Virus record (IMG/VR): IMGVR_UViG_3300009514_000001
Location: 1 to 64,000 of that record
Direction: 5' to 3' (one strand)
Length of the DNA stretch: 64,000 nt
Position numbers and translations under genes: made by a program. This document shows, piece after piece, positions 13,615-49,737 of the stretch; position 1 is the stretch's first letter; every line of letters begins with the position of its first letter. The notes beneath the pieces are model-generated. The model saw nothing but the letters and a program-made list of their open reading frames with translations, was not told where the DNA came from and made no database searches.

Positions 13615-14658
13615 ATGAGAAAGCCCTCTGTCGACAAATTCCAAGGATGCCTCATTGGGTGCGCTGTCGGAGATGCCGTCGGCGCTCCCGCGGAAACCTG
13701 GGGACTGCGAGAGTGTCAGACCTACGTCAAGACCAAGGTCGGACCCATGGCCTTTGAGAGGGTGTTCCGGACGTCCAGAAAGGGCGAGCGAGTCCCCTTC
13801 GGACAGTACACCGACGACACCCAGCTCACCCGAGAGCTGATCTCGTCCATCCTCGACCGCGGCGAGGTCGACCCTGAGCACTACGCCGATATCCTCGTGG
13901 ACCTGTTCGGTAACCGCAACCCGGTCGGTACCGGACGAGCCACTAGAGCGGCCGTCACCCGCCTCTATCAGGGAGTCCCCTGGGACGAGGCAGGAACGCC
14001 CTCGCCATCCGCGGGCAACGGCTCGGCCATGAGGGCCGCCCCCGTCGGCCTGCTCCACTGGAACACCAGGCCGAAGCGTATCAAGAACCTGGTCGAGGAC
14101 GCCGAGGCCCAGGGCATCATCACGCATGCCAACCCCGTGTGTACCGCGGGGGCCGTTGCCCTCGCCACTGCCGTCAAACAGGCCCTCTCGCCCGCCCCTC
14201 CGAACACGCTACGCTGGTGGAAGGACCTGGCGGAGGGGGTGTCCTGCGTGGACCACAACGCCTACGACGACGTCCCGATGGACGAACTTATCCTGAGCCT
14301 GTGGAAGCGCCGTGAGGCCAAACCCGAGGACATCAGGACCTGGCTGATGGACATCACCCCAGACTTCGGCACCAAGTGGCGGGGTATCAGCTCCTGGGTT
14401 GTCTCCAGTGTCCTCTGGTCTCTGTACGCATTCCTCCGGACCCCGGACGACTTCTGGATGACCATCCAGACGGCTATCTGGCCGGGAGGAGACGTCGATT
14501 CGACCGCGGCCATGGCAGGGGCCATCAGCGGCGCCTACAACGGCCTGGGAGCCATTCCCGAGGACGTGGCCAGGCAGGTCAACGACGACGGCTCCCAGGG
14601 CTATGAGGAGCTGTGTGAGATGGCCAGCAAACTCCATCAACGAACAGTAGGAGGCTAG
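13615..14658 (+). CDS. ADP-ribosylglycohydrolase (ARH/DraG family)
   Basis: AVGDAVG, YTDDTQ, GNGSAMRAAPVG and GGDVDSTAAMAGAISGA motifs. Confidence 0.92.
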   Translation: MRKPSVDKFQGCLIGCAVGDAVGAPAETWGLRECQTYVKTKVGPMAFERVFRTSRKGERVPFGQYTDDTQLTRELISSILDRGEVDPEHYADILVDLFGNRNPVGTGRATRAAVTRLYQGVPWDEAGTPSPSAGNGSAMRAAPVGLLHWNTRPKRIKNLVEDAEAQGIITHANPVCTAGAVALATAVKQALSPAPPNTLRWWKDLAEGVSCVDHNAYDDVPMDELILSLWKRREAKPEDIRTWLMDITPDFGTKWRGISSWVVSSVLWSLYAFLRTPDDFWMTIQTAIWPGGDVDSTAAMAGAISGAYNGLGAIPEDVARQVNDDGSQGYEELCEMASKLHQRTVGG

Positions 14659-17287: not shown

Positions 17288-17644
17288 ATGGAGCTGAGGG
17301 AGTCCCCAATGGCCTGGAAAGTGGTTTACGATGGACGACGTGGGCAGAGTCTCCACCCGGTTGAGAAGCCGGCGCCCGAGTGCGTCTCGCCCCACTGTGA
17401 CTGCAAGACACAGTGGCCCAAGCCCTCTTGGGACAACCATCTGGGGTTTCGCTACGCCGATCACAGCAACCATTGGGAGGTCCGAGATGCCGCCCTAGCC
17501 CTGGACAACCGGGCTGAACGGGCGGTTCCATCCCTGTGGCTCGCCCACATGGAGGAGATCGGCCGCCCCGTGAGACAGGTCTCTTGGAGAGGGGCCCACG
17601 GCAAAATCCCGAAATTCTACAGAAGAAGAGGACAAGAGCAATGA
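17288..17644 (+). CDS. Hypothetical protein
   Basis: GAGG RBS; ATGA overlap with the ligase N-half. Confidence 0.55.
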   Translation: MELRESPMAWKVVYDGRRGQSLHPVEKPAPECVSPHCDCKTQWPKPSWDNHLGFRYADHSNHWEVRDAALALDNRAERAVPSLWLAHMEEIGRPVRQVSWRGAHGKIPKFYRRRGQEQ

Positions 17645-18756
17645 ACAAGAGCGCGCTCACCAGGAAGATTGAAGATGCCAGAAAGGCCTACTACGGACCT
17701 AACGCCCCTCTCATGACGGATGCCGAGTACGATGCTCTCGAAGACGAGCTTCGCCTCCTCGACCCCGAGCATTACCTGCTCATGACAACAGGGACTCCTC
17801 CTGGCGACAGCGGCTGGGAGAAGGTCTCCCACGGCATCCCGATGCGCTCACTCAACAAGGCCCAGGTCTTCGATGAGATGGGCACCTGGTTCAAGAGCCT
17901 GGGACAGGTCCCCTGCCCACCTCTGGAACCCTCTCTGGTATTGACCGAGAAGCTCGACGGGATCTCATGCTCCCTCCAGTACATCAAGGGCCGACTCGTC
18001 TCGGCCCTGACCCGAGGTGACGGTGCCGTGGGTGAGGATATCACCCGCAACGTCAGTCTGATGAAGGGCGTTCAACACCGGCTGCCGAAAGGACCCTATG
18101 AGAACTGGAGCGGCCACCTCCGAGGTGAGATCGTCTGTCGCCGGTCCGACTTCGAGAAGCACTTCAAGGGCTACTCGAATCCCCGGAACACGGCGAGCGG
18201 GACGGCCAAACGTGAGAGCGACCCGGAGCCCTGCAAACACCTGACGGTCATCGTCTACCAGATGGTTCCCGAGGGCGGCTACATGATTTCGAAGATGACG
18301 GAGCTGGAGACCATCCAGAGCCTCGGGTTCATCGCCCCCAACTACGTTGGCCTGAAGTTCGACCGCATCGAGTCCATCTACCGAGGGTACGTTGACGACC
18401 AACGGGAGCTGTTGGACTACGACATCGACGGCCTGGTCATCGAGGTCAACTCCCAGTCCTTCGCTGAGGACCTCGGCGAGCTGAACAAGAGACCCAAAGG
18501 TGCCGTCGCGTTCAAGTTCCCCCACGACTCCAAAGAGACTACCCTGGAGCGCGTCGAATGGCAGGTCGGCAACACCGGCCGCATCACGCCGGTGGCGGTG
18601 TTCAAGGCGGTCAACCTGGCCGGTGCCAACGTTACCCGGGCAAGTCTCCACAACGTGTCCTACGTCAAGTCACTCAATCTCCACGAGGGCGACAAGATTC
18701 TCGTCAGCCGACGAAATGACGTCATCCCGGCCGTAGAGTCCAACCTCTCAAGGTAA
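17641..18756 (+). CDS. ligA: NAD-dependent DNA ligase, N-terminal half (Ia + adenylation + OB domains)
   Basis: YY..D.EYD.L, EKLDG, RGDG..GEDIT, NPRN.ASG, DIDGLV, WQVG.TGRITPVA and RASLHN; stops right after VIPAV. Confidence 0.93.
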   Translation: MNKSALTRKIEDARKAYYGPNAPLMTDAEYDALEDELRLLDPEHYLLMTTGTPPGDSGWEKVSHGIPMRSLNKAQVFDEMGTWFKSLGQVPCPPLEPSLVLTEKLDGISCSLQYIKGRLVSALTRGDGAVGEDITRNVSLMKGVQHRLPKGPYENWSGHLRGEIVCRRSDFEKHFKGYSNPRNTASGTAKRESDPEPCKHLTVIVYQMVPEGGYMISKMTELETIQSLGFIAPNYVGLKFDRIESIYRGYVDDQRELLDYDIDGLVIEVNSQSFAEDLGELNKRPKGAVAFKFPHDSKETTLERVEWQVGNTGRITPVAVFKAVNLAGANVTRASLHNVSYVKSLNLHEGDKILVSRRNDVIPAVESNLSR

Positions 18757-29734: not shown

Positions 29735-30361
29735 ATGCCGAAGAAGGATAAACTTCTGTCTCTCGGCAAAGCCTCCACTTTGCTAGGTCTTCACCCAAAC
29801 ACACTCCGCAACTGGAGTAATGAGGGGAAGATCAAGTCCGTCCGAACGCCTGGGGGTCACCGTAAGTTCCCCCTCTCGGAGGTCCAGAAGCATATGGGGC
29901 TGGAGTCCTCTGAGGATCAACCAGGAAACCGCACCGCCATCTACTGCCGTGTCAGCAGTCACGACCAGAAGAAAAAAGGTGATCTAGAACGCCAGGCGGG
30001 CCGGGTGAGTTCTTACTGCGTCCAGAAAAGCTACCAGGTGGTTGATGTCCTCCAAGATGTCGGGTCTGGTATGTCTGAGAATCGACCTCGTTTGCGTAAG
30101 CTATTCAAGTTGGTGGACGACCACCAAATTGACCGGGTGGTCGTCGAGCACAAGGACCGCCTGACCCGGTTCGGTTTCGGTCTCTTGCAAGCCTACTTCG
30201 GGAGTCACGGAGTGGCCATCGAGTGGACAGAGGAGACTCTGGGGAAATCCTACGAGGAAGAGTTGGTGGAGGACATCTTGTCCCTCATGGCGTCCTTCTC
30301 CGCCCGCATCTACGGCAAGCGTTCCGCTGAAAACAGGAAGAAAGCCCAGGATAATAAATGA
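29735..30361 (+). CDS. tnpA: IS607 serine-recombinase transposase
   Basis: MerR-like HTH (LGLHPNTLRNW..RTPGGHR), then IYCRVSS.DQK..DLERQ and EHKDRLTRFGF. Confidence 0.93.
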   Translation: MPKKDKLLSLGKASTLLGLHPNTLRNWSNEGKIKSVRTPGGHRKFPLSEVQKHMGLESSEDQPGNRTAIYCRVSSHDQKKKGDLERQAGRVSSYCVQKSYQVVDVLQDVGSGMSENRPRLRKLFKLVDDHQIDRVVVEHKDRLTRFGFGLLQAYFGSHGVAIEWTEETLGKSYEEELVEDILSLMASFSARIYGKRSAENRKKAQDNK

Positions 30362-31080
30362 AAATGAGAGTCTGTATCCCATATTTCGGCGCGAAGTTTA
30401 TGAGAGCACCTCACTACCCGGCCCCTCAACACGACACCATTGTGGAGCCTTTTTGTGGGGGTGCGGGTTATTCTCTGAGACATCACATGAAAAAGGTGAT
30501 TCTATTTGACAAGAGTGAGTACGTCGTTGGTGCCTGGAGGTTCCTTCTCAGATCTCCAAAAAAAGAAATACTCAATTTGCCCCTTCTGGAACCTGGTGAG
30601 GACGTATCCGATCTGAGCATCTGCCAAGAGGCAAAGTGGTTGATCGGGTTTTGGATCAATCAGGGATCTGCGGTTCCGAAGAGGACTATGGGGGGCAGGC
30701 GGTCAAATAGAAGATTCGGAACCTGGGGAGATGCTGCCCGTCAGCGACTTGCTGACCAAGTTGGATCCCTTCGTCACTGGGAAATAAATCAGGGGAGTTA
30801 CACAGAAGTGCCTGATATTAAAGCGACTTGGTTTATAGACCCTCCATACCAAATCCAGGGTAAACATTACCCCCACCGCATCGGGGACTATACGGGTTTG
30901 GCTTTATGGTGTCGGAGCCGAAGAGGTCAGGTGATGGTGTGCGAAAGTGAAGGCGCAGACTGGCTTCCTTTCTCTCCTGTCACAACTGTCGTCGGTGCCA
31001 CGCACCGAAAGACAACCGAAGTTCTCTGGACAAACAAAAACGAGGCATTGGTTCCTCCTATCCACAAGGTGGATAAGTAG
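30358..31080 (+). CDS. Dam/D12-class N6-adenine DNA methyltransferase
   Basis: YFGAK, IVEPFCGGAGY (motif I) and FIDPPY (motif IV). Confidence 0.85.
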   Translation: MKMRVCIPYFGAKFMRAPHYPAPQHDTIVEPFCGGAGYSLRHHMKKVILFDKSEYVVGAWRFLLRSPKKEILNLPLLEPGEDVSDLSICQEAKWLIGFWINQGSAVPKRTMGGRRSNRRFGTWGDAARQRLADQVGSLRHWEINQGSYTEVPDIKATWFIDPPYQIQGKHYPHRIGDYTGLALWCRSRRGQVMVCESEGADWLPFSPVTTVVGATHRKTTEVLWTNKNEALVPPIHKVDK

Positions 31081-31082
31081 TT

Positions 31083-32346
31083 ATGTCTGTCGTCCAAAGG
31101 GCATACAAGGTTGAGATCGACCCCAATAACAAGCAACGCACCGCTCTGCGGTGCCGCTCTGCGGTGCCACGCTGGTTGTGCCAGGTGGGCATTCAATTGG
31201 GGACTCTCCCGTAAAATCGAGTCCTACAAGGAGACGAGGAAGTCCCCGAACAACATCGAGCTTCATCGGGAGTTGAATAAGCTCAAGAGGGCCGACCCAG
31301 AGAACGGTGGAATTCCCTGGATGTACAACGTCTCGAAGTGCGCACCACAGGAAGCTCTCCGAGACCTGGATAAAGCGTTCAAGAGCTTCTTCAGACGCTG
31401 TAAGAAGGGGGCCAAGAGAAAAGGTTTCCCTCGGTTTAAATCTCGTCGGAAGAGTCCCCTCAAATTTCGCCTCACAGGGGCTATCAGGACTTCCGAAGAC
31501 GGCAAACAGATCAAACTCCCCAACTTGGGGTGGATCCGGCTCAAAGAGACCGGGTACCTCCCAGGACCCGAGAGGAAAGAAGTGAAAATCCAGTCGGCAT
31601 CACTCTCTGAGCGAGCCGGAAGGTGGTTCGTTTCTCTGACCTGTAAAGTAGAGGTTCCTGATACCGCACCACGACCGAGAACCAAAGTCGTTGGGGTGGA
31701 TGTTGGAATCAAATCTCTTGCGGTGACGAGCGACGGACAGGTGTTCGAGAATCCGAAAGCCCTGGCTCGTGTGCAACGCCGCTTGCGGCGAGCACAAAAG
31801 GCACTGGCTAGGAAACAGAAGGGCAGTAGGAATCGGGAGAAGGCACGTAGGAGAGTTGCGAAGCTCTACTATCGGGTGTCGTGCATCCGACAAGATGCTC
31901 TACACAAAGCCACCAGTGAGATCGTGAAGGGCGCAGATGTAGTCTGCATCGAGTCCCTGAACGTCTCTGGGATGTTGAAGAACAGGAAACTCTCTCGTGC
32001 TCTTTCTGACGCATCCCTGTCGGAGTTCTTGCGTCAGTTGGCCTACAAGGCTGAGTGGGCCGGTGTTGAGGTGGTAGAGGCCGACAGGTTCTACCCATCG
32101 AGCAAGACCTGTTCTGGGTGTGGTCACGTCAAACAGGACTTGTCTTTGTCTGATCGTACCTACTCTTGTGGGGAGTGTGGTTTGGTGATGGACCGAGACC
32201 TGAATGCCGCAATCAATTTGAAAAACTTGGCCCCGAGTTCCGGGGTGTCAGCCTGTGGAGAGAATGTAAGACCCCAGTCGGAGCTTGCTCGGGTTGGGGC
32301 TATCTCTGCGAAACAGGAACCGAACACAGGAGCTACACCATGTTAG
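31083..32346 (+). pseudogene. tnpB: TnpB RNA-guided nuclease, frameshifted by a 13-bp duplication at 31141-31166
   Basis: GVDVG, CIESL and DRDLNAA RuvC residues and the Zn ribbon are intact; removing one CCGCTCTGCGGTG restores MSVVQRAYKVEIDPNNKQRTALRCHAGCARWAFNW. Confidence 0.88.
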
Positions 32347-33265: not shown

Positions 33266-35011
33266 ATGGCCAAGGCCGACAAACTCAAGCGAAAGCTCCT
33301 CCCCCCCAACCACACTGCTGCCGACTTCCAGTACAGGGGTCGGCCATCGACTGATGTGGGCGACTTCGGCGAGGACGTGGGTATCGCTGACGGAGCTTGC
33401 GTCAACCAGTTCGGCGATGACGGCTCCGACAAGGGCCGCAACAACTGCAAGTACTACCACGGCGGCGTCGTCCAGAGTACCAAGGACAACTCCTGGTGGT
33501 GCTACTTCCAGTACGGACGCATCGACGACAGTGGCGAAAGCTGGACGGCCCCCTACTCGAACCCGGCGAAGGGTGGCGACTTCCGCGGCGGAGACTTCCA
33601 GTTCTACGGATGCGAGAGCGAGGCCCACGCGCGCAAAGAGTTCGCCGCCCAGATGAGGAAGAAGTCCACGAACCGCCTGGAGAGGAAAGACCTCGGCGGT
33701 GGCGTGAAGGTCTGGGTCTCGAAGACCGACAAGAACGGCAAGAGCAAGGATGGCTACATCATCCAGGCCTTGGCCACACGGACCCGAGGCCTCCCCGACG
33801 CCTACACCATCAAGGACGACACCGGAGTCACCATCAAGGACGACACCGGAGTCGCCGAGGCGAAGGCGAAGCCCAAGAAGAAGACCAAGCGAGCGTCTTC
33901 GGCCCCCAAGGTCCACCCCCAGGTCGTCAAGCTCGCCCAAGACCTCGTGGGTGGTACCAAGACCTTCGCCCGGGCTGCCGCGGCGGCCACGGGTGTCACG
34001 CCCACCCTGGCGGCCATCACCGAGGCTCGCGACGTCATCATCCCCCAGGCGCTCCAGCTCCTCGCCAAGATCGGAGATGACCTCGACGCCCAGCTCAACG
34101 ACAAGAACCTCCAAGGACTGTCCCGCTACATGGCCGGGCGCATCCCCGTCATCATCCCTCGTGGAGCCACTCAAGAGGACCGGGCCAAGATGCTGCTCCT
34201 CTCCAAAGACACCATCATGGAGCGCCAGCAGGACCTCGACGCGTTCGAGGCCGCCCTCAAGTCTGAGGACTTCGAGACCGAAGGGGACTCCCCGGTCGTC
34301 GACTACAACGCCATGCTCGGCGCCCTGGTCGACTGGATTGACCCCCAGAGCGAGTTGGGAAGGTGGTTGGAACCCACATTCCGGGCGATGTCGAACAATC
34401 GTCACTACAACAGTAGGGGACGTCTGGTCATCAAGAACATGTTCAAGGTGGTTCGGCCGGACAGGGACGCCCTTTTCGTGGCTGCGACCAAGAAAGTCGC
34501 TGCCAAATGTCGGGGAAGAGTCGACCTCAAGGCGCGTCTCCAGCCACCAGCCAGGCCCGATGTGTCGGACATCTCGGACGAATACGACCAGGCCAACGTG
34601 TTCCTGGGCATCCACGGAACCCGGGCTGTGAACATCCACCCCATCATGTCGACGAACCTGAGACTTCCAAAGTCTCTCAGAGGAGTCGTAATCACCGGCA
34701 GTGCCTTCGGATCGGGTATTTACGCAGCTTCCGACTGGAAAAAAAGCTATAATTATTGTGGGCTTAGCAGCTCCTACTACGGGGGTGGAGGTACGATTTC
34801 GGGCCGCGGGTTCTTCATGTTCCTCCAGGACATCATCATGGGCCAGGCATACAAGGCCCGATCCGTGGGTTCTTGGCAGACTCCTCCCAACGGGTGTGAC
34901 TCCATCGCGGCCTACCCGGACTTCATGAGGACGCTTCAGAACGACGAGCACATCATCTTCGACCCGTCGTATCAGCGTATCCGATACCTCATCGAAGGGG
35001 AGATTCACTAG
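33266..35011 (+). CDS. PARP-like ADP-ribosyltransferase with WGR and helical regulatory domains
   Basis: YFQYGRI (WGR-like), helical middle, IHGT, GSAFGSGIYAAS..KKS.NY, FMFL.D...G and LQNDEHIIFD..Q.IRYL (H-Y-E triad). Confidence 0.85.
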   Translation: MAKADKLKRKLLPPNHTAADFQYRGRPSTDVGDFGEDVGIADGACVNQFGDDGSDKGRNNCKYYHGGVVQSTKDNSWWCYFQYGRIDDSGESWTAPYSNPAKGGDFRGGDFQFYGCESEAHARKEFAAQMRKKSTNRLERKDLGGGVKVWVSKTDKNGKSKDGYIIQALATRTRGLPDAYTIKDDTGVTIKDDTGVAEAKAKPKKKTKRASSAPKVHPQVVKLAQDLVGGTKTFARAAAAATGVTPTLAAITEARDVIIPQALQLLAKIGDDLDAQLNDKNLQGLSRYMAGRIPVIIPRGATQEDRAKMLLLSKDTIMERQQDLDAFEAALKSEDFETEGDSPVVDYNAMLGALVDWIDPQSELGRWLEPTFRAMSNNRHYNSRGRLVIKNMFKVVRPDRDALFVAATKKVAAKCRGRVDLKARLQPPARPDVSDISDEYDQANVFLGIHGTRAVNIHPIMSTNLRLPKSLRGVVITGSAFGSGIYAASDWKKSYNYCGLSSSYYGGGGTISGRGFFMFLQDIIMGQAYKARSVGSWQTPPNGCDSIAAYPDFMRTLQNDEHIIFDPSYQRIRYLIEGEIH

Positions 35012-36423: not shown

Positions 36424-37389
36424 ATGATGTCTCTCTCCCCGAAAGAACTGGTCGAACACTCCATTACCATCGCCGAGGAGTACCGGCGTCAGGGCCTCAA
36501 CCTGACCCTACGCCAGCTCTACTATCAGCATGTCGCTAGGGGCCTCACGGGCTCCGGGCAGAAGGTCTACAACCGCCTGGGGGCCGCCCTGACCAAGGCC
36601 CGCTACGATGGCAGGTTCCCGGTCGAGTGGCTCTGCGACCGGGGGCGGTCTGTAGAGTCCTCTCAGTCGACGGGCCACAACGTGAAACCCGACTCCGCGA
36701 TGGTCCAGGCTGAGCGCATCATCGGCGACCTTCCACACTGGCTACTCAAGTCTGAGCGCTGGGTGGGCCAGCCTATATACGTTTCGGTGTGGGTCGAGAA
36801 GGAAGCCCTGGCGGGGGTGTTCGAGCCCGTCACTCAACAGTTGGGCGTCGGCATGTTCGCCTGCAAGGGATACCCCTCTGTCAGCGCCCTGTACCAGTGG
36901 CTCGAACAGGCCGACCGAGCCGCCCAGGGCATCTGGGACGACGGTCACGACCACTTCGAGGGCCACGCCGAGAGAGCGGTGGTGCTCTACTTTGGCGACC
37001 ACGACCCTGATGGCTTCGAAATTCCGAGGTCGGCCAAGCGCAACCTCGACAAGCTGGTCAACGTCACCCGGTTCGATCCCGGGCCCATCGAGTTCCGGCG
37101 CATCGCCCTGAATATGGACCAGATTCGCCAGTACTCCCCACCCCCGTTCGAGGCCAAGACCACCTCCTCACGCTACGCCACCTACCGCGTAGAGCACGAC
37201 ACCGAGGACGCCTGGGAGCTGGATGCCCTGGAGCCGACGGTCCTTCGCGATCTCATCAGGACCAACGTCCGGGCCTTGTTCGACCAGGACATCTATGCGG
37301 ACAACCAGGACCTGGTTCGAGAGGCTCGCGAGGAGATGCGTGAGCGCATGGCCGACATCGAGTGGCTCGAAGAGGTCGTCGGAGACTAG
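36424..37389 (+). CDS. Topo VI-A/Spo11-like TOPRIM-domain protein
   Basis: TLRQLYY, VWVEKEAL, GDHDPDG and WELDAL. Confidence 0.75.
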   Translation: MMSLSPKELVEHSITIAEEYRRQGLNLTLRQLYYQHVARGLTGSGQKVYNRLGAALTKARYDGRFPVEWLCDRGRSVESSQSTGHNVKPDSAMVQAERIIGDLPHWLLKSERWVGQPIYVSVWVEKEALAGVFEPVTQQLGVGMFACKGYPSVSALYQWLEQADRAAQGIWDDGHDHFEGHAERAVVLYFGDHDPDGFEIPRSAKRNLDKLVNVTRFDPGPIEFRRIALNMDQIRQYSPPPFEAKTTSSRYATYRVEHDTEDAWELDALEPTVLRDLIRTNVRALFDQDIYADNQDLVREAREEMRERMADIEWLEEVVGD

Positions 37390-37886
37390 CGCTCCAGCGG
37401 CACCGGGACGCCAGAGTAGGGAGCCTGCTTGAGGTCCCCGGACTTGACCACCCCGGCCAGGTGCCGGATGTAGGCCTCGGCGACCTCACTGGCGCTATTG
37501 AGGCCGGAGATGTTCGGCGGGTCGATGTGAGAGGCGCTGAAGCTCTCCGTGATGTTCGGCTTGCGGGGGTCGTGGACGAACTGCTGGAACATCGCCGCCG
37601 GCAGCTCAACCACGAAGAGCATGGCCCGGTGGTCGCCCGACTTGAACAAGTTGAGATGCAACTTCCGATCTCCATCCAGGTGGACCCGAGGCGGGTGTGA
37701 GTTACTCGGGTCGATGTTCGTCGCCCTCTTGCGGATGAGTTCGACGACGGCATCTCTGAACTTGCGGGAGAGATCGACGTCGGTGGTCGAGAGGAGCTGA
37801 CGGATGTAGGCCAGGGACGACGTCTGCTGCGTCACGTAGATGTAGGCCACCCTCCTGGCGATGTTCTCGGCGGCTTGTCGGTTCAT
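37386..37886 (-). CDS. Hypothetical protein (IARRVA motif)
   Basis: GAGGAG RBS. Confidence 0.55.
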   Translation of the reverse strand: MNRQAAENIARRVAYIYVTQQTSSLAYIRQLLSTTDVDLSRKFRDAVVELIRKRATNIDPSNSHPPRVHLDGDRKLHLNLFKSGDHRAMLFVVELPAAMFQQFVHDPRKPNITESFSASHIDPPNISGLNSASEVAEAYIRHLAGVVKSGDLKQAPYSGVPVPLER

Positions 37887-37936
37887 CCAGCCCTCCTCAA
37901 GTCTCTACAGAGTACCAGGCGATAGAGAGACAAGTG

Positions 37937-37965
37937 GGTCCACTTTCGGACCCGGTGTCGTATGG
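37937..37965 (+). promoter_or_regulatory. Putative phage promoter GGTCC-N18-GTATGG in front of the cas operon
   Basis: Exact spacing, 23 nt before the GTG start at 37988. Confidence 0.6.
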
Positions 37966-37987
37966 AGGGCTACGAGGTGAGGAAAGA

Positions 37988-39985
37988 GTGAGAGACATCT
38001 ACGCCAGGCCGGGACAGCTTCTTTACGACCACCTGCTGGGTGTCTGTCGAAAAGCTCTCCCAAAGGCAGCTCGACTCAATCTTGAAAAGCCCCTGTTTGA
38101 CCTGATTGTGAGCCACGATTTAGGTAAGGCTTCATTTCTCTGGCAGCAAGGATTGCAGAGAGGAGACAGACCCCTGCCTGACCACGTCTCCGCAGGGGCT
38201 AAGGTACTTCTCGACAGAGGGAGTCCGCTATTCCTGTTGTCGCATAGCCACCATGGTAGTCTAGGCAGTCTCGCGGCTTGTCGCCCCCAAGTAGGGGAGT
38301 TCTCAGTACCCGAAGAAGTTCTGATTTGGCTCTCTGATAACGCACCGAGGCTGGCTAGTGAAGTCCACCAAGAGCTGGGCCTGGGTGTTGAGTTCGGCAG
38401 GGAGAACAACCCCTGGTGGCTGGAAGACACCCCAGAACAGGTCTCTCTTCGTCTACGGCTCCTCTTCTCCCTTCTTGGAGACATGGACATCCAAGATGCT
38501 AGGGAGTTCGACACAGGAGAACGCCAGAATCATCACGGAGTGCAGGAGCTTCACCAGAGGTTCTTGGAGTGGGTCGACAACAGTCCCTCAACTGTCGTCT
38601 CCGAAGCCCTAGCGTTCGCCCGGCACCCCCCCGGTAGGTACCGCATCACATCCCCCCACCCCATCGGCAAGACGACTGCGGGGCTGGGATACGGACTGGC
38701 CCATGCGAGGGCGCACGACCTGGACAGGGTCGTTCTGGTCGCCCCCTACCTTTCCCACCTACACCATCTGGAGGAGCGTCTCACAGACCTCTTCGGAGAG
38801 CGACTGGTCTCTAGTTCAGTTCTCCAGCACCACACCGGGATAGCCACTTCCGAGTTGTCTCCTTGGGCCAAGCCGCTCATCCTGACTACCTCGGCCCAGT
38901 TCTGGGGGACCCTCAACCATCACCATAAGATGGCCCTCCGCAACGTCCACTATCTCTCCCACAGTGTCGTCATCCTCGACGAGAACCAGGCTCTCACCTC
39001 TCGCCTTCACGACCACTATGAAAGCACCCTGAACCTGATGCGGGATGAGTGGGGGTGTTCGATTGTGCAGACAGGACAAACTATCCGTGCCCGCTCAAGA
39101 GAGATGCCAGCCCGCCTGTCGTCTTCCTCAGGGACAGATAATCGGTCGTCCACCCTACTAGGGGAGGTGGAGTGGTCTGCTGTTGCCTCACGGGCTAGTG
39201 AGTCGACCAGAGCAATGGTTGTCACCAACACCATCGCCGATGCTCTGGAGGTGGCCAGCCACATGCCGGAGGGAACTGTGTGCCTGACCAGTCGCCTCTG
39301 CTCGCGAGACCGACAGGACATTGGACACCGCCTCCGCCTCCGAACACAAGAGGGCCCCCTGAGAGTGGTTGCGACTCCCCTGACGGAGACAGACACCGGG
39401 ATGCTCTTCGGTCTCGTGTTGAGGGCCATGTGTGGAGCGGGGTCCCTGCTCCTTTCACGGGCACACCTCCTCCCCGGAGGGGAGATGGGCATCTTCACCT
39501 CGACACCCCCAAGGGCGGCTGGTCGGGATGCCGCTATTACCCAGAGGCTTCTCCAAGACCCCTGGCAGCTCACAGACTCGGACTGGCTGGCCGAGTACTA
39601 CGACCAAGTCTTAGCGACAGGAACCGTCAGCTCCGACCTCGTCAGAGCGGCCCATGAACTCGACTTCAGAGGAGCATCCAGAGCCTTCAGGCTCATCTCA
39701 GATAACAAGACCAACATCCTGCTCGTGAGACACCCCAACGTTGACATCCAAGATGAGATTGACTCCGTATTGGGAGGCCTGAGGTCCCCCTCACCAAGGA
39801 TACGGCGAAAAGCGCGTCGAGACGCCCTGAGATACTCCGTGCCCCTTTCTGAGTATGAGTTGAACTCTGCTAGGAACCAGGGCCTTATCGGAACCCTCGC
39901 CACACATCTGGAATGTGACCTCGAAACACCCATCTGGCTAGGGGGCTACGACGACACAAGTGGAGGACTTCGTTTTTTCTCTTGA
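37988..39985 (+). CDS. cas3: Type I-C Cas3: intact HD domain, degenerate SF2 helicase
   Basis: DHL, SHDLGKA, DHVSAG and SHHG (HD); SPHPIGKTT, ILDENQ, VTNT, ATPLTETDTG and SLLLSRAHL (eroded helicase motifs). Confidence 0.88.
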   Translation: MRDIYARPGQLLYDHLLGVCRKALPKAARLNLEKPLFDLIVSHDLGKASFLWQQGLQRGDRPLPDHVSAGAKVLLDRGSPLFLLSHSHHGSLGSLAACRPQVGEFSVPEEVLIWLSDNAPRLASEVHQELGLGVEFGRENNPWWLEDTPEQVSLRLRLLFSLLGDMDIQDAREFDTGERQNHHGVQELHQRFLEWVDNSPSTVVSEALAFARHPPGRYRITSPHPIGKTTAGLGYGLAHARAHDLDRVVLVAPYLSHLHHLEERLTDLFGERLVSSSVLQHHTGIATSELSPWAKPLILTTSAQFWGTLNHHHKMALRNVHYLSHSVVILDENQALTSRLHDHYESTLNLMRDEWGCSIVQTGQTIRARSREMPARLSSSSGTDNRSSTLLGEVEWSAVASRASESTRAMVVTNTIADALEVASHMPEGTVCLTSRLCSRDRQDIGHRLRLRTQEGPLRVVATPLTETDTGMLFGLVLRAMCGAGSLLLSRAHLLPGGEMGIFTSTPPRAAGRDAAITQRLLQDPWQLTDSDWLAEYYDQVLATGTVSSDLVRAAHELDFRGASRAFRLISDNKTNILLVRHPNVDIQDEIDSVLGGLRSPSPRIRRKARRDALRYSVPLSEYELNSARNQGLIGTLATHLECDLETPIWLGGYDDTSGGLRFFS

Positions 39986-40079
39986 CGAGAGTCAGAGAAA
40001 GCCCTTGCCTTTCCGACCACGGGAACACCCGGGGAACTATTAACAACACAATGTGGTTGAGGCGAAAATTGAGGCGAAA

Positions 40080-40754
40080 ATGAACCTGAGAAAACTACTC
40101 AGCGACCCTGTGAGGGTCAAGGTCACAGGCAGAAGAGGCCTCTTTTCGCGCCATGACTTTCCTACGGAGAGGATTTCATACCCTATCATGACCCCCAGTG
40201 CCGCCCGGGGGCTGCTCAGAAGGATATACGGAAAACCTCAGCATTTCTGGGTGATACAGGCGGTTCAGGTGCTGAATCCAATTCGGTTCGAGAACATCAC
40301 CTACAACGAGGTGAGACTCCCGAAGAGACCTGTTCCTGTGAATGTTAGCAATACATCTCAGGTCCGTATTCAGAGGTCTGCCCAGGTTCTCATAGAGCCC
40401 TCCTACATCATCGAGGCACGGGTTCTGGTGCATCCCTATGCGTACAGGAACGGAGGCATGCCCACCAAGCACACGGAACAGCTCAAGAGACGTCTGAAGA
40501 GGGGCCAGTTCTTCCTCCAACCCGATCTCGGCAAGAGCGAGTTTTTCGCTGATTGTTCTTTGCCGGACGGCAGCGAGAGTCCCCTTCCAGTGAGCCAGGA
40601 CCTCGGCCGTATCCCTCTCTTCGTCGATCAGAGCGAAGGGCGCTCGCACTACTTCCAGGCCTTCATGAAGCGGGGTGTGGTGCAGGTGCCGCAGAAGCAG
40701 CTTCTGGACGTCCTGGAGCCGAAACTCCTCGACCAAGACCCTTGGAGAACGTGA
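40080..40754 (+). CDS. cas5: Type I-C Cas5 (Cas5d, crRNA-processing)
   Basis: ERISYPIMTPSAARG.L..IYGKP..W.I..V.VLNPIRF..I..NEV; TKH..Q..RR..RGQ.F.QP.LG..EF. Confidence 0.92.
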   Translation: MNLRKLLSDPVRVKVTGRRGLFSRHDFPTERISYPIMTPSAARGLLRRIYGKPQHFWVIQAVQVLNPIRFENITYNEVRLPKRPVPVNVSNTSQVRIQRSAQVLIEPSYIIEARVLVHPYAYRNGGMPTKHTEQLKRRLKRGQFFLQPDLGKSEFFADCSLPDGSESPLPVSQDLGRIPLFVDQSEGRSHYFQAFMKRGVVQVPQKQLLDVLEPKLLDQDPWRT

Positions 40755-42655
40755 TGTACAATCTCATCCGAGAACTCACCAAAGTACGGGTGCCCTCGAC
40801 GTTCCCGGGCCCTGGGTATCTCCTCAGAACTGCCAACGTGTTCTGTCACCTAGACAGATCGGGATTCTCTCACTGGGAGGTCAAGAAAGAGGGTGAGCTT
40901 TACATGCTCCCCGACTCTGGACGTACAGGGACGGGTACAAAGGTCGGCCTGTGGGGTGACCAGGTGAGGGTCTACACCGGGAACAAGGAGACCAAGAAGG
41001 CCCGGGCCAAGAGAGAGGCCGCGAACAAGGCGAAGGGGAGAGACAACTCCAACGACTTGGCGGTTGCAATGGCCAAAGCTGTGAGCGAGGCCCACAATCG
41101 CATCAAGGGCCGCGCCGGAGAGGACACCAGGCTGAGTCTCGTCTACACATTTCTCACGGACGAGAGTCAGCGTCAGCGGGCTTACGATGCCCTTCCGGAT
41201 GACGTGAACCCGAACAGTCCTGTCGTCCTTGTTGTCGAGGGGAGGACGATGGTCCGTCCCCAGGAAGGTCCCTGGGCATCTCCGAACATCGACCTCTACG
41301 AGGAAGAGGGCAAACGCATTGCCTGGGTAGGCAATCTCAAGACCGTCGAGGGGGTGTGTAGCGTCACAGGCGAAAAGGACCTCATCCCCGACATCCACCC
41401 TGGGTCCGTGAAGATTGGTGACTCCAGAGCCCAGCTACTTTCCGGAAACATCCCCCAACACTTCCCCAATCCCAAAGGCAAGCTGTGGAGCACTGGCATC
41501 GGCCTGGAGGCTGCCCAGCAGTACACGACCGCCCTTGACTACCTGACGACGGACAAGAACCACCACCTGACGGCCCTCCACACCACGACCAAGAACCCCT
41601 CCTCCAGCGACTTCCAGAAGATAGTCTGGTGGGGCCGGGACGAGGACGCCTCCCTTCCTATCTACCAGAGCATTATCCGCCCCTCTGCGGAAGTCCGCAC
41701 GGCTATCGAGGAAGCCCTTGAGGGGAGGGGAGGTCCGGTCAACCTCGAACACCCCTTCAACACACTCGTCCTAGGTACCCACGTCAGACGCCTGGTGGTG
41801 CTCAGCATGTCGAGCGATACCCTCCTGGGTGTCTACCAGAGTGCCAGTCGATGGCTGAGAATGACCGAGACTCTCAGCGTTGATGAAAGGGGCGCCCTTG
41901 CCCGGAAAAACCACTCTCTCAAGGCCCTGTCGAGGGCCCTTCTGCCCCGCTCAAAGGAGGGTGAGTGGTTCGGTAAGTGCTCTCCCTACACGACGCAGGA
42001 CATCCTGAGGTCCATGCTCTTTCGGGAGCCCCTCACCAAGAGGCTCATCCACGGCCTGATGACTCGTCTCGAACGTGACCAACAGCTAACCACCGCCCGC
42101 ACAGCCCTCTTGCAGGTCTACCTACACCAACGAGGAATCATGGCTGACAAGACCCAAGCCCGAACCCCCATCGACCCGGAACTGGGAGGGTACGTCGGAT
42201 ACAATCTCGGACGTCTCCTCCAAGAGGCGACGGCCATCCAAAAGGCGGCAATCCGAGTCAATCGGGACTTGAGTTCCACCCTCTCATCCTACGCCAAGAA
42301 CCACCCCCGACGGCTGTACGACAAAACCACTCAGAAGGCGGACAATCACTTGACCTCTCTCAGGACCAAAGGGGACTACGGACTGGCCTCAATGTTCGAG
42401 AAGCGCCTGGGGGCCATCATCGGACGCATCTCTATGGTGCCGAAACAACTTCCCGAGGAGCAACTCGCACTGTTTCGCAAGGGACTGCGGGATCAGTATC
42501 TGGCCTCCCAGGCCGCCAACAAAAGACGATCTCAACTTAACAACGAGGACATCGCCAAGGACGAACTCGCATACCAGAAAGCGCAGGTCGACCTGACTCT
42601 AGGTCTCATTGACCCGGAGGACTGCCCTGCACCACCCACCACCGACAAGGAGTGA
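40754..42655 (+). CDS. cas8c: Type I-C Cas8c large subunit
   Basis: CSVTGEK...HP, AAQQYTTALDYL and C-terminal GYNLGRL..Q..A; TGATG coupling to cas5. Confidence 0.82.
   Translation: MYNLIRELTKVRVPSTFPGPGYLLRTANVFCHLDRSGFSHWEVKKEGELYMLPDSGRTGTGTKVGLWGDQVRVYTGNKETKKARAKREAANKAKGRDNSNDLAVAMAKAVSEAHNRIKGRAGEDTRLSLVYTFLTDESQRQRAYDALPDDVNPNSPVVLVVEGRTMVRPQEGPWASPNIDLYEEEGKRIAWVGNLKTVEGVCSVTGEKDLIPDIHPGSVKIGDSRAQLLSGNIPQHFPNPKGKLWSTGIGLEAAQQYTTALDYLTTDKNHHLTALHTTTKNPSSSDFQKIVWWGRDEDASLPIYQSIIRPSAEVRTAIEEALEGRGGPVNLEHPFNTLVLGTHVRRLVVLSMSSDTLLGVYQSASRWLRMTETLSVDERGALARKNHSLKALSRALLPRSKEGEWFGKCSPYTTQDILRSMLFREPLTKRLIHGLMTRLERDQQLTTARTALLQVYLHQRGIMADKTQARTPIDPELGGYVGYNLGRLLQEATAIQKAAIRVNRDLSSTLSSYAKNHPRRLYDKTTQKADNHLTSLRTKGDYGLASMFEKRLGAIIGRISMVPKQLPEEQLALFRKGLRDQYLASQAANKRRSQLNNEDIAKDELAYQKAQVDLTLGLIDPEDCPAPPTTDKE
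42140..42655 (+). CDS. cas11: Cas11c small subunit from an internal in-frame start in cas8c
   Basis: GAGG-AATC-ATG in frame, just before the Y.LGRL C-terminal domain. Confidence 0.6.
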   Translation: MADKTQARTPIDPELGGYVGYNLGRLLQEATAIQKAAIRVNRDLSSTLSSYAKNHPRRLYDKTTQKADNHLTSLRTKGDYGLASMFEKRLGAIIGRISMVPKQLPEEQLALFRKGLRDQYLASQAANKRRSQLNNEDIAKDELAYQKAQVDLTLGLIDPEDCPAPPTTDKE

Positions 42656-42659
42656 AAGA

Positions 42660-43613
42660 ATGGACGTCAAGTGTATCAACCCAAAGACCCGCCACGATTT
42701 GCTAATCACCTTCAGCGTCACCCGAGGCAACCCCAACGGAGATCCGGATGCCGGAGGAGCGCCCCGAGAAACCCAGGATGGCTATGGCATCGTCACCGGT
42801 GAGAGCATCAAGCGCTTGGTACGGGATGCCGCGGAAGAGGTCTTCGAACAGAAGATTTACATCCGGTCCGGACCGCCCCTAGAGGAGGCTCTGTTGAAGG
42901 CCGTCGAGCGAGCCTACAACGGAGACTCCTCCGAAGCTCCCCGTGACAAGAAAGGCAACCTCCTGGTGGCCCAGGTACCAAAGGACAAAATCCAGGCCAT
43001 CCTCGACGAACTGAGATCGTACTTCGACAACCGCATGTTCGGAGCCGTTTTCGCCAGTCAGAAAGTCCCTGTCGGACGATTCCGAGGACCCGTAGCTATC
43101 GGAGATGCCCGGTCCTTCGATGAGATCGTAGTCCGAGAAAATCGCCTCACTCGGGTCGTCTCCGCCAAGTCCGATGAGGGCAAGGACCGAACCGGCCAGG
43201 GCACCTTCGCGGAGCGCTACGCCGTCGACTTCGGCTTCTACGAAAGCTTCGGCAGCTTCAGCCCCCACGGCTCTGGCAAGCACGTCTCCGAGGAGGACCT
43301 CAAGGTGCTCTTCCAGTCTCTCGTCACGGGGTTCCAAGAAAGCGCCTCCGCCCGTCGTGGGGGCTCCTACCAGGTTCACCGCATCTACGTGTTCACGCAC
43401 GACAACGCCCTGGGTAACGCCTCCCAGCACGATCTCCGCAAAGTCGTCAAGGTGACCAAGCGGAAAGACGTGGATAGTCCCCTCTCCCTCGACGACTACC
43501 TCGTCGAAGTGAACCGAGGTGCCATCCCCAAAGGAGTTCACCTGAGCATCATCGACAACAGCAACGTCCTGGACCCGCAGGCCTGGTACGTCGACAGCTC
43601 CCGTCCTCGATAG
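42660..43613 (+). CDS. cas7: Type I-C Cas7 (Csd2)
   Basis: GNPNGDPDAGG.PR, G.VT.ESIKR.VRD, FDNRMFGAVF, RGPV and HDNALGNA. Confidence 0.95.
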   Translation: MDVKCINPKTRHDLLITFSVTRGNPNGDPDAGGAPRETQDGYGIVTGESIKRLVRDAAEEVFEQKIYIRSGPPLEEALLKAVERAYNGDSSEAPRDKKGNLLVAQVPKDKIQAILDELRSYFDNRMFGAVFASQKVPVGRFRGPVAIGDARSFDEIVVRENRLTRVVSAKSDEGKDRTGQGTFAERYAVDFGFYESFGSFSPHGSGKHVSEEDLKVLFQSLVTGFQESASARRGGSYQVHRIYVFTHDNALGNASQHDLRKVVKVTKRKDVDSPLSLDDYLVEVNRGAIPKGVHLSIIDNSNVLDPQAWYVDSSRPR

Positions 43614-43789
43614 TACCCGTTCGAACACCCCAGTGATGAGGAGACCCCTAGGGGTGCTCGAACGATAATGAAATCAATAGGTTGGATGCACTTTTGAGAG
43701 CCTCCCATCTTGTTCTTTGATAAGTGAATTAGGGGTGCTCGAAAACAGTACTCCAACTACCTAAGAACACTAGCTTTTGGGCTAGTGCG
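43614..43789 (+). promoter_or_regulatory. CRISPR leader
   Basis: AT-richer region with CGTTCGAACACCCC/GGGGTGCTCGAACG inverted repeat and a second AGGGGTGCTCGAA. Confidence 0.7.
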
Positions 43790-45473
43790 GTCGTCTTCTC
43801 GAAAGAGGAGACGGGAGATTTCAACGTGAGAAAGCTGAGGAGGTTCTGGAAGCATGGAGCGTCGTCTTCTCGAAAGAGGAGACGGGAGATTTCAACGAGG
43901 TGGGCGTAGACTCCGGGGGACTCGCCTTCAGTCGTCTTCTCGAAAGAGGAGACGGGAGATTTCAACGAGTTCGATGGGGACCGGCTTAAAGGAATCCTGA
44001 GCAGGTCGTCTTCTCGAAAGAGGAGACGGGAGATTTCAACGCCGAGAAGTACCCGGTGTAGTCGTAGCCATGGAACAGTCGTCTTCTCGAAAGAGGAGAC
44101 GGGAGATTTCAACGAGTGTGTAGTGGGCTGCCCCGCTACGGATTACGGGTCGTCTTCTCGAAAGAGGAGACGGGAGATTTCAACGATGATGCCTGCGGTG
44201 ATGTAGGGGCCGTCTTTCCGGGTCGTCTTCTCGAAAGAGGAGACGGGAGATTTCAACCTAGGATAGGGAAACGGGTTCAGCCGAAGACGCACGTCGTCTT
44301 CTCGAAAGAGGAGACGGGAGATTTCAACGTTGAAGAGAAGACCAGGAGAGACAGAGAGGCCACGTCGTCTTCTCGAAAGAGGAGACGGGAGATTTCAACA
44401 ACGTCGACACCAGTCTCTTCTCGCCCTTCTTGAGAGGTCGTCTTCTCGAAAGAGGAGACGGGAGATTTCAACTGATTCTGTCGGACACGACTGTCCTCGA
44501 CGCACTGAGTCGTCTTCTCGAAAGAGGAGACGGGAGATTTCAACGTCTTCAGGAGAGCTGGAGCCGACCCCACCCGACCCCACCTGAGCCCGTCGTCTTC
44601 TCGAAAGAGGAGACGGGAGATTTCAACATGGTCAGGGTCTCGACGGGGAGGTGATACGAGGGCGGTCGTCTTCTCGAAAGAGGAGACGGGAGATTTCAAC
44701 CCGAAGAGATCGTCGGAGGCGAATCCGCCACCCACGAGTCGTCTTCTCGAAAGAGGAAGATTTCAACTATCCGAGGTTAGAACAGGACAGTGAAGGTGTC
44801 GCCTGAGAGCTGAACTCGTGTCGTCTTCTCGAAAGAGGAGACGGGAGATTTCAACAGGGCCTGGCTACCCCCAGGAGACTTCTGGGCGGGCGTCGTCTTC
44901 TCGAAAGAGGAGACGGGAGATTTCAACTCACTCTCGTGGTCCACATCCAACCTCGGGGCTCCTGTCGTCTTCTCGAAAGAGGAGACGGGAGATTTCAACG
45001 ATGAAGAGCCGAAGCCGCGCCAGCGCCCGAGAAGCGCGTCGTCTTCTCGAAAGAGGAGACGGGAGATTTCAACGGAGGGACAGCGTGTTTCTTCTTCGGC
45101 TTGGCTTCCTGTCGTCTTCTCGAAAGAGGAGACGGGAGATTTCAACCGGAGCAGATGCTACGCAGGGCGGAGACTGCCCGCGGTCGTCTTCTCGAAAGAG
45201 GAGACGGGAGATTTCAACGGACTACGAGCGCCGCTATCCTGGCACCACGCACCCCGTCGTCTTCTCGAAAGAGGAGACGGGAGATTTCAACAGGTGCGGT
45301 CGTCTTCTCGAAAGAGGAGACGGGAGATTTCAACAAAGACAGGGACACGGTCGTTCACACCTGGTGTCGTCTTCTCGAAAGAGGAGACGGGAGATTTCAA
45401 CGGCAATGTCGCCCGCTGTTAGCCCCCAGCGCAGCCAGTCGTCTTCTCGAAAGAGGAGACGGGAGATCCGGGG
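43790..45473 (+). CRISPR. Type I-C array: 24 repeats GTCGTCTTCTCGAAAGAGGAGACGGGAGATTTCAAC (36 bp), 23 spacers, mostly 34-38 bp
   Basis: Counted by hand; 9-bp stem with GAAA loop and a G-U pair supports the + strand; the last repeat (45438) is degenerate. Confidence 0.97.
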
Positions 45474-49589: not shown

Positions 49590-49734
49590 GCAGAGTCCGC
49601 GCGAGCGGAGATGAGCCCGACCCCTGCTGCGGGACCGGTGGGATGCTCGCGCCTACCCCACATGCGTGGGGATGAGCCCGTACCCTGGTCTGATGCGAAG
49701 CCCGAGTCCGCTCCGCACACGCGGAGATGATCCC
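49590..49734 (+). CRISPR. Degenerate type I-E-like mini-array: 3 repeats of 29 bp, spacers of 32 and 26 bp
   Basis: Repeats at 49590-49618, 49651-49679 and 49706-49734, each 5 nt + 6-bp stem + 4-nt loop + stem + ATGA(G/T)CCC. Confidence 0.65.
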
Positions 49735-49737
49735 CTC

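Follow-up and report, generated by a model that had tools for sequence, protein, structure and literature searches.

The first 64,000 nucleotides of the IMG/VR record IMGVR_UViG_3300009514_000001 (hereafter the window), part of a 222-kb predicted phage genome, encode a stripped-down type I-C CRISPR system. Its very divergent Cas3 retains the residues of the HD nuclease site but has lost most of the residues that power the helicase motor. This Cas3 therefore probably cuts a target locally instead of shredding it, an inference that rests on sequence alone. The first-pass annotation had reported a Cas3 with an intact HD nuclease and an apparently dead helicase in an uninterrupted frame of 665 amino acids, and this observation was confirmed. 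Its interpretation, an undescribed I-C variant selected for local nicking, recombination or repression rather than processive degradation, was only partly supported.

Genomic context

The cas3 gene (37988..39985, + strand, 665 aa) is the first gene of a cas3-cas5c-cas8c-cas7c operon followed by a CRISPR array. The open reading frame extends over 37934..39985, and a first GTG at 37934 would yield 683 aa. The GTG at 37988 is preceded by a GAGG/AGGA Shine-Dalgarno-like stretch and also corresponds to the public gene call of 665 aa. The coding frame has no internal stop, against 23 and 30 stops in the other two forward frames, and hence is not open by chance. The gene is followed by cas5c (40053..40754, +), encoding the pre-crRNA endonuclease, cas8c (csd1; 40754..42655, +; 633 aa) and cas7c (csd2; 42660..43613, +; 317 aa). 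Cas5c and Cas8c score above the Pfam cut-offs (Cas_Cas5d 59.7 against 23; Cas_Csd1 132.6 against 27), and Cas7c passes the NCBIfam cut-off (TIGR02589, 187 against 182.25). The Tyr/Lys/His triad of Cas5c (RIYGKP, TKH) was identified by alignment to 3kg4 and 3vzi and is intact (PMC8524198).

A partly A+T-rich leader (43614..43789, +) separates cas7c from the array (43790..45473, +), which consists of 24 repeats of 36 nt and 23 spacers. Of the repeats, 22 are identical, one carries a 9-nt internal deletion near 44738 and the last is degenerate at its 3' end; one spacer is only 7 nt long. The repeat folds as a 10-bp stem, a GAAA loop and an 11-nt 3' tail, a typical I-C hairpin. Apart from Cas3, the system looks functional. 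No Pfam hit to the adaptation module cas4-cas1-cas2 was obtained among the called genes within 10 kb on either side, and the array directly follows cas7c. A search of Rfam with positions 36-52 kb returned nothing, and a promoter and terminator scan of the operon gave no signal above shuffled expectation.

No self-match of the spacers in the window exceeded chance 11-18-mers, no target was found in the phage collection, and none was found in viral contigs for spacers 1-3, so that activity of the system in nature remains an inference. The repeat was found only on the source contig among viral contigs, and neither in metagenome contigs nor in the genomes of 185,579 species. Hence, neither a host nor a sister phage was identified. 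A search of viral contigs with Cas8c likewise recovered only the source contig itself.

Affiliation and conserved nuclease motifs

In an exhaustive HMMER search of 1.84 billion representative sequences, the protein obtained 3484 hits, the best with E=2.5e-45. Its AlphaFold2 model (pLDDT 89.6, pTM 0.91) best matches solved type I-C Cas3 structures in Foldseek (8zns, E 3e-32, TM 0.73; and 8g9u_P), although the prediction leans on the homologue alignment and does not prove that this sequence folds or docks. In contrast, the scores remain below the curated family cut-offs (TIGR01596, 33.4 against 43.45; TIGR01587, 28.9 against 102.45; PF22590, 15.9 against 27), and no HD or DEAD Pfam hit was obtained. 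Both RecA-like domains and the C-terminal domain (CTD) are present and modelled with confidence, which sets the protein apart from the stand-alone Cas3'' HD nucleases of I-A and some I-B systems.

The HD nuclease domain (37988..38542, aa 1-185) contains H15 (DHL), H43-D44 (HDLGK), H66 (DHVS), H88-H89 (SHH), S161 and D165/D167, all of them conserved in alignments of 13, 24, 150 and 14 sequences. The histidine of the N-terminal 'AH' motif is replaced by arginine. The possibility that this replacement disables the HD site was rejected, since arginine is a recurrent natural variant found at this position in 14 of 130 homologues. The CTD (39524..39982, aa 513-665) keeps 7 of 7 highly conserved columns.

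Erosion of the helicase motifs

The RecA1-like domain (38630..39118, aa 215-377) and the RecA2-like domain (39119..39523, aa 378-512) are eroded at positions that are 89-99% conserved in 149 homologues. In motif I (nt 38651-38674), PTGGGKT is changed to PHPIGKT: T224 and G225, both 98-99% conserved, are lost, whereas G227-K228-T229 are kept. In motif Ia, Q260 is replaced by histidine. Motif II (nt 38978-38989), DExQ, is kept as DENQ, a feature that the first-pass annotation did not mention. Motif III (nt 39074-39082) reads GQT instead of TAT. In motif V (nt 39371-39406), TQLVEAGVDxDFP is changed to TPLTETDTGMLFG, and in motif VI (nt 39437-39466), QAAGRCNR is replaced by a 5-residue deletion plus LSR. 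A low-complexity linker predicted with low confidence spans about aa 361-390, starting at the end of the RecA1 part. The earlier claim that both arginine fingers are gone is not certain, since in three MAFFT alignments the arginine of LSRAH (R491) aligns with the second motif VI arginine; the assignment depends on the placement of the gap. With GKT, the DE of motif II and possibly one motif VI arginine retained, a dead helicase is likely but not proven.

The erosion is specific to this lineage. All 23 nearest relatives inspected, including the sister sequence P0040, keep the motifs. Among 150 family members, the window protein lacks 42 of 84 highly conserved helicase columns, the most of any, followed by one protein lacking 32 and a third lacking 18. 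The loss is also concentrated in the helicase domains: HD and CTD together keep 25/29 conserved columns (18/22 in HD) versus 42/84 in the helicase (Fisher p=0.0008), while P0040 keeps 28/29 and 66/84, respectively. The protein has the longest terminal branch in the family tree (2.18 versus a median of 0.76). Its overall divergence is nevertheless not exceptional within the operon: Cas7, Cas5 and Cas8 are equally divergent, with 39%, 39% and 27% identity to the L005 system, whose Cas3 (P0041) is the second-best hit. Some of the change thus reflects fast evolution in general, and the anomaly lies in which residues were lost rather than in how many.

As proposed with the first-pass annotation, orthologues sharing these losses were sought. 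The phage collection contained no close relatives by DNA and only proteins of about 24-27% identity. A word-indexed search of 5.8 billion proteins gave at most 28% identity, and the exhaustive HMMER search at most 34%. The only other contig with the gene is 99.99% identical over 9.8 kb, which precluded a dN/dS estimate for this lineage and leaves purifying selection on this copy unsupported by direct measurement.

A second lineage of Cas3 with eroded helicase motifs

A second clade of five full-length I-C Cas3 proteins (P0085 and P0189-P0192; loci L006, L009 and L010) was found to have perfect HD motifs but no working Walker A or motif VI. These proteins are encoded ahead of cas5c, and one member heads a cas3-cas5c-cas8c-cas7c operon without cas4/1/2; no phage context is evident. 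The comparison of P0085 with P0189 gave a dN/dS of 0.148 in the RecA domains and 0.150 in HD, indicating purifying selection across the dead domains. The clade shares with the window protein the loss of motif I T/G, Ia Q, III, V and VI, but has also lost the Walker A GK and, in some members, the Walker B DE. The two lineages lost overlapping residue sets (18 shared losses, Fisher p=0.009) and kept the same ssDNA-path residues. In a FastTree reconstruction, without an AU test, the window protein groups with P0040 (support 97), whereas P0085 lies in another clade of 16 members (support 98) at a path distance of 4.98. With 26-32% identity, the two lineages hence appear to have an independent origin.

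Comparison with described systems

Canonical type I-C Cas3, represented by the Neisseria lactamica protein (PDB: 8zns, 8g9u), has the same domain order (HD, RecA1, RecA2, CTD), the same HD residues, the same operon order and the same repeat architecture. The window protein shares only about 20% identity with it, is about 100 residues shorter, has eroded motifs I, Ia, III, V and VI, lacks an associated cas4-cas1-cas2 module and is carried by a phage. Engineered Cas3 proteins with an intact HD site and a disabled motor nick the R-loop strand and represent the functional state proposed here. Motif I, II or VI mutants of a I-F Cas3 (ZmoCas3 K458A/D608A/R887A) nick plasmids (PMC8753164), a motif III mutant of the I-E Cas3 of E. 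coli (S483A/T485A) nicks only the non-target strand (PMC9427990), and the I-G Cas3 variants K39A and D164A still protect against plasmid and phage P1 (PMC10482374). Those are, however, single laboratory substitutions in other subtypes, whereas here many residues changed naturally and the Walker A lysine and Walker B aspartate targeted in those mutants are kept.

The huge-phage type I-C variant of Al-Shayeb et al. 2020 (PMC7162821) similarly combines a I-C-like Cascade and Cas5d-type processing with the absence of Cas1/Cas2. It has an unrelated helicase in place of Cas3 and so lacks the nuclease, whereas here the nuclease is kept and the helicase function is eroded. HNH-Cascade systems (Cas8-HNH, Cas5-HNH) are type I derivatives that replace processive shredding with local cleavage (PMC10910872, PMC11459484); they lost cas3 and gained an HNH domain in Cascade, while in our case Cas3 itself is retained and modified.

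Proposed function and alternatives

The best reading of these data, to which we assign a probability of about 0.5, is that the gene encodes a real, expressed Cas3 of a huge phage's interference-only CRISPR system, with its motor lost or severely weakened and its nuclease site and scaffold kept, and that this Cas3 acts as a Cascade-recruited, ATP-independent nickase. In this view, Cas5c would cut the array transcript, as inferred from its intact triad, and Cas5c, Cas8c and Cas7c would form Cascade with the crRNA and open an R-loop on a matching target, as inferred from homology. Cas3 would dock through its retained RecA-like and C-terminal surfaces and take up the displaced strand, for which the ssDNA-path residues W293, T300-T301, R318, H321, T463 and R479 are kept, and the HD site would nick this strand without ATP. 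Cleavage of ssDNA without ATP has been observed for I-C Cas3 (PMC11417383). Because the residues that bind ATP and couple hydrolysis to movement are eroded (motif I T/G, Ia Q, III, V and VI Q..GR), Cas3 would not reel and shred DNA over kilobases, and damage would stay local as a nick or short gap that replication can turn into a break. The analysis itself establishes the sequence features, their lineage and domain specificity, the operon and array, and the convergent second lineage; every biochemical step is inferred. For the suggested role as a silencer no specific support was obtained, and the intact HD site argues for cutting rather than mere binding.

Alternatively, the helicase may still work, perhaps slowly, with non-canonical motif residues, and the system may degrade targets processively like ordinary I-C. 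The retention of G227-K228-T229, D331-E332-Q334 and the ssDNA-path residues, the alignment of R491 with the second motif VI arginine and the confidently predicted fold are compatible with this reading, and ATP binding and some hydrolysis cannot be excluded. It is nonetheless considered unlikely, since G225 is replaced by proline inside the P-loop and Q260, A364, G469, D471 and the Q..GR of motif VI, all 95-99% conserved in 149 homologues, are missing. Single substitutions at motif III or VI already abolish translocation in other Cas3 proteins (PMC8753164, PMC9427990), and the same residues are lost in the clade that also lacks the Walker A lysine. Somewhat less likely still is a decaying relic, with Cas3 no longer contributing and either Cascade alone binding targets, as in silencing, or the whole locus inert. 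The long terminal branch, the scores below all curated cut-offs, the low complexity and atypical second-codon-position G+C (0.59) of the RecA2 segment, the defective repeat, the 7-nt spacer and the absence of known orthologues would fit such decay. However, 665 codons without stop or frameshift despite heavy divergence, and a CTD conserved downstream of the eroded part, argue against long neutral decay. The conservation of HD ligands and CTD alongside the loss of equally conserved helicase residues indicates selective rather than uniform change, and the neighbouring cas genes are intact.

As a further alternative, Cas3 might supply only the nuclease, while a separate helicase, encoded elsewhere in the phage or provided by the Cas3 of the host, supplies movement, as in the split Cas3'/Cas3'' systems of other type I subtypes. 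A phage without adaptation genes may depend on host CRISPR parts anyway, and only 64 of the 222 kb was inspected, which leaves room for a helicase acting in trans in the other 158 kb. This possibility is the most doubtful of those considered: no helicase gene lies within 10 kb on either side, and a scan of viral contigs with two I-C Cas3 helicase-motif patterns (motifs Ib and VI) returned no second locus on this contig, although patterns derived from intact motifs cannot count eroded Cas3 genes in phages. Furthermore, the repeat search described above revealed no host system with matching repeats.

A broader and more tentative hypothesis, somewhat less likely than not, is that type I-C systems which have shed their adaptation genes repeatedly convert Cas3 from a shredding motor into a natural, ATP-independent RNA-guided nickase. 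Such a conversion would have arisen at least twice, once in this phage lineage, caught at an intermediate stage with GKT and DE still present, and once in the conserved clade with fully dead Walker motifs under purifying selection. Searches of the literature revealed no description of such natural variants, which is absence of evidence and not proof of novelty. Cas3 is defined by the coupling of a nuclease to a motor, and processive shredding is taken as the hallmark of type I interference. Compact nickase systems so far exist only as laboratory mutants, and natural Cas3 proteins of this type would offer them ready-made, while the conserved clade makes the idea directly testable with more than one protein. 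Natural Cas3 proteins that keep the nuclease and scaffold but drop the motor would show that evolution also uses Cascade-Cas3 for local cutting, and would say something about what a phage needs from a CRISPR system: a nick may be enough to stop a rival replicon.

Genomic context

The region analysed comprises the first 64 kb of a 222,005-bp metagenomic contig (JGI 3300009514, Ga0129284_10000009) that is listed in IMG/VR as a viral genome. Its gene content fits a huge phage and includes an NAD-dependent DNA ligase, an ADP-ribosylglycohydrolase, a transposase, a phage-type topoisomerase, a DHH phosphoesterase, an endolysin/amidase and proteins with Cpn10, PARP and NYN domains. The ADP-ribosylglycohydrolase, the NAD-dependent DNA ligase and a 581-aa protein with a PARP domain form a cluster of NAD/ADP-ribose-related genes (13615-14658, 17536-18756 and 33266-35011). 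An IS607-like unit (29894-32346), made of a serine recombinase (Resolvase domain) and a TnpB (OrfB_IS605/Cas12f-like) gene, sits in the only marked G+C dip of the window (0.53 against about 0.60).

The frame of the cas3 gene is open on the plus strand from 37934 to 39985. The GTG at 37988 is preceded by a stretch resembling a ribosome-binding site and gives the 665-aa product of the public gene call (P0001). Downstream follow cas5c (40053-40754), cas8c (40754-42655), cas7c (42660-43613), a 176-nt leader and a CRISPR array of 24 repeats of 36 nt (43790-45473). The repeat folds into a 10-bp stem with a GAAA loop and an 11-nt 3' tail, the layout of type I-C. The last repeat is degenerate at its 3' end, so the array is read on the plus strand with the operon. 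One repeat carries a 9-nt internal deletion (about 44738-44764), one spacer is only 7 nt long (45292-45298) and two spacers are long, one of 47 nt and one of about 46 nt. These irregularities suggest recombination or decay within an array that cannot be renewed by its own adaptation genes. No Cas1, Cas2 or Cas4 domain is on record within 10 kb on either side. The locus is an interference-only type I-C system on a phage.

Directly upstream of the operon, a gene at 36424-37389 (+) encodes a 321-aa protein matching a phage 'DNA topoisomerase' family (phrog_6247, E 1.7e-67). It has no Pfam hit, but carries RQLYYQ and GDHDPDG, which by eye resemble the catalytic-tyrosine and toprim motifs of topoisomerase VI-A/Spo11-like proteins. 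A 166-aa gene without family match (37386-37886, minus strand) is transcribed divergently from cas3 across a 100-bp gap and could be a regulator of the operon. A further intergenic region (49590-49737) contains three units that look like type I-E CRISPR repeats and appear to resemble those of actinobacterial I-E systems. Each is a 5-6 bp hairpin followed by GATGAGCCC or GATGATCCC, with spacings of 61 and 55 nt, and the stems differ in sequence but stay complementary. They could be a degenerate mini-array or solitary repeat-like RNAs aimed at a host I-E system.

Sequence and predicted structure of the phage Cas3

The reading frame has no internal stop, against 23 and 30 stops in the other two forward frames. 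The protein is a homologue of Cas3, although a remote one. Pfam recognized only a weak C-terminal helicase match, and the NCBIfam HD and helicase-core models scored 33.4 and 28.9 bits, below their cut-offs. An exhaustive HMMER search gave 3484 hits, the best at 34% identity, whereas a sequence search of the PDB found two type I-C Cas3 chains through RecA1 only. A structural model built from 150 homologues was predicted with confidence (pLDDT 89.6, pTM 0.91) and best matched the type I-C Cas3 structures 8zns and 8g9u.

The first-pass annotation had described a Cas3 with all HD metal-ligand motifs and an eroded helicase, and this observation was confirmed. In four alignments every HD residue listed there is conserved, together with S161 and D165/D167. 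The erosion of the helicase motifs is also as described. Motif I reads PHPIGKT in place of the family consensus PTGGGKT, motif III reads GQT in place of TAT, motif V reads TPLTETDTGMLFG in place of TQLVEAGVDxDFP, and in motif VI (QAAGRCNR) a 5-residue deletion leaves LSR. Our alignments add that motif II (DExQ in this family) is intact as DENQ and that the motif Ia glutamine is lost. They also correct the claim that both motif VI arginine fingers are gone, since the Arg in LSRAH aligns with the second motif VI arginine in all three MAFFT alignments in which motif VI was read out, and hence one arginine may survive.

The whole operon is divergent. Compared with an ordinary bacterial I-C locus (L005), Cas7 is 39%, Cas5 39%, Cas8 27% and Cas3 35% identical. 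The anomaly is not the amount of change but where it fell. Of the columns conserved in at least 85% of the other 149 homologues, the protein keeps 18/22 in the HD domain and 7/7 in the CTD, but only 27/50 in RecA1 and 15/34 in RecA2 (Fisher p=0.0008). Among the 150 sequences it lacks the most helicase columns (42), and the lost residues include G225, Q260, A364, G469 and the Q and R of motif VI, each 99% conserved. Its nearest relative, P0040 (34% identity), keeps 66/84 helicase columns and all catalytic motifs except the motif V Gln, which is Pro in both proteins. P0040 is encoded on a phage-like contig (locus L004, 207-2396) with no Cascade genes or array in the 10 kb downstream, and could be a lone phage Cas3, or its partners could lie off the contig.

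The phage Cas3 has the longest terminal branch in the family tree (2.18 against a median of 0.76). After that much change, an open frame with a conserved CTD downstream of the eroded region argues that the protein is still made and used. No orthologue was found and there is no sequence variation between the two contigs that carry the gene, so that this argument rests on the open frame and the conserved domains and not on a measured selection on this copy. The one sign of relaxed constraint is a low-complexity, low-confidence stretch after motif III (about aa 361-390), together with an atypically high second-codon-position G+C in RecA2.

A second lineage of helicase-eroded Cas3 proteins

The runner-up in lost helicase columns, P0085, led to a small clade of type I-C Cas3 proteins (P0085, P0189, P0190, P0191 and P0192; 54-79% identical to P0085; loci L006, 316-2493; L009, 238-5784; and L010, 295-5908). 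All members are full length (720-780 aa). None has a helicase Pfam domain on record, and all but P0189, which has no Pfam hit at all, have an HD domain on record. Their HD motifs are perfect. In contrast, Walker A reads GPPADRT or similar, with no Gly-Lys, Walker B is DEFQ, EGFQ or DDFQ, and motifs III, V and VI are gone. P0085 is followed by the start of cas5c. P0190 heads a cas3-cas5c-cas8c-cas7c operon (L009) that runs straight into unrelated genes, with no cas4/1/2 and no array on the 8.5-kb contig. Between P0085 and P0189, dN/dS (Nei-Gojobori) is 0.150 in HD, 0.148 in the two RecA-like domains and 0.186 in the CTD. The dead domains of this clade are therefore conserved and not decaying.

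In the phylogenetic tree this clade sits apart from the phage protein, in separate clades with support 98 and 96-97. Long-branch attraction would tend to join the two lineages rather than separate them, and on the basis of this tree, without an AU test, we take the losses as independent. The two lineages lost overlapping residues, with 18 shared losses among 85 columns (Fisher p=0.009). The shared losses are motif I T/G, Ia Q, III, V AGVD.D and VI Q..GR, whereas both lineages kept W293, T300-T301, R318, H321, Q334, R442, T463, E467, F474 and R479. W293 corresponds to W354 of the Neisseria I-C Cas3 (the conserved Trp preceding motif Ib in alignments A1-A3, three of the four alignments), named there as important for helicase activity, and D331 corresponds to its Walker B D392 (PMC11417383).

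Inferred mode of action

The other parts of the system look functional, as judged from sequence. Cas5c has the Tyr-Lys-His triad (as defined in PMC8524198), Cas7c passes its curated cut-off, and 22 of the 24 repeats are identical. We propose that Cascade forms an R-loop, that Cas3 docks and takes the displaced strand, and that the HD site nicks it without ATP, with no long-range reeling to follow. Laboratory work supports each step for other Cas3 proteins. I-C Cas3 cuts ssDNA without ATP (PMC11417383), and motif I, II or VI mutants of a I-F Cas3 nick plasmids (PMC8753164). A motif III mutant of E. coli Cas3 cuts only the non-target strand and keeps collateral ssDNase activity (PMC9427990), and helicase-deficient I-G Cas3 still protects E. 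coli from a plasmid and from phage P1 (PMC10482374). While the motif losses, their concentration in the helicase domains and the second clade are results of the sequence comparison, every step of this model is inferred for the present protein.

Alternative readings remain possible. GKT, DE-Q and perhaps one arginine are retained, so residual ATPase activity is possible and this lineage may be at an intermediate stage. A helicase acting in trans cannot be excluded, because 158 kb of the phage lay outside the region analysed. However, none is located within 10 kb, and a scan of viral contigs with two I-C Cas3 helicase-motif patterns returned no second locus on this contig. No target was found for any spacer tried and no host was identified, so that activity of the system in nature is likewise inferred. 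The first-pass interpretation as a natural nickase or silencer is supported in part. A nickase is the best mechanistic guess, to which we assign a probability of about 0.5, whereas the silencer reading has no specific support.

By homology, predicted fold and gene context the protein is a type I-C Cas3. It fails the curated HMM cut-offs and the helicase-motif criterion, so it is a derived member rather than a typical one. It differs from the huge-phage I-C variant of Al-Shayeb et al. (PMC7162821), which replaced Cas3 with another helicase, and from the HNH-Cascade systems, which lost Cas3 altogether (PMC10910872). Functionally, the closest counterparts are laboratory helicase-dead mutants. Literature searches found no description of natural helicase-eroded Cas3, although the literature covered was incomplete. 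The loss of the motor with retention of the nuclease is well supported by the comparative evidence and by a convergent, conserved clade, and the pattern of ATP-site residues lost and DNA-contacting residues kept in both lineages is what a strand-holding scaffold without a motor would show.
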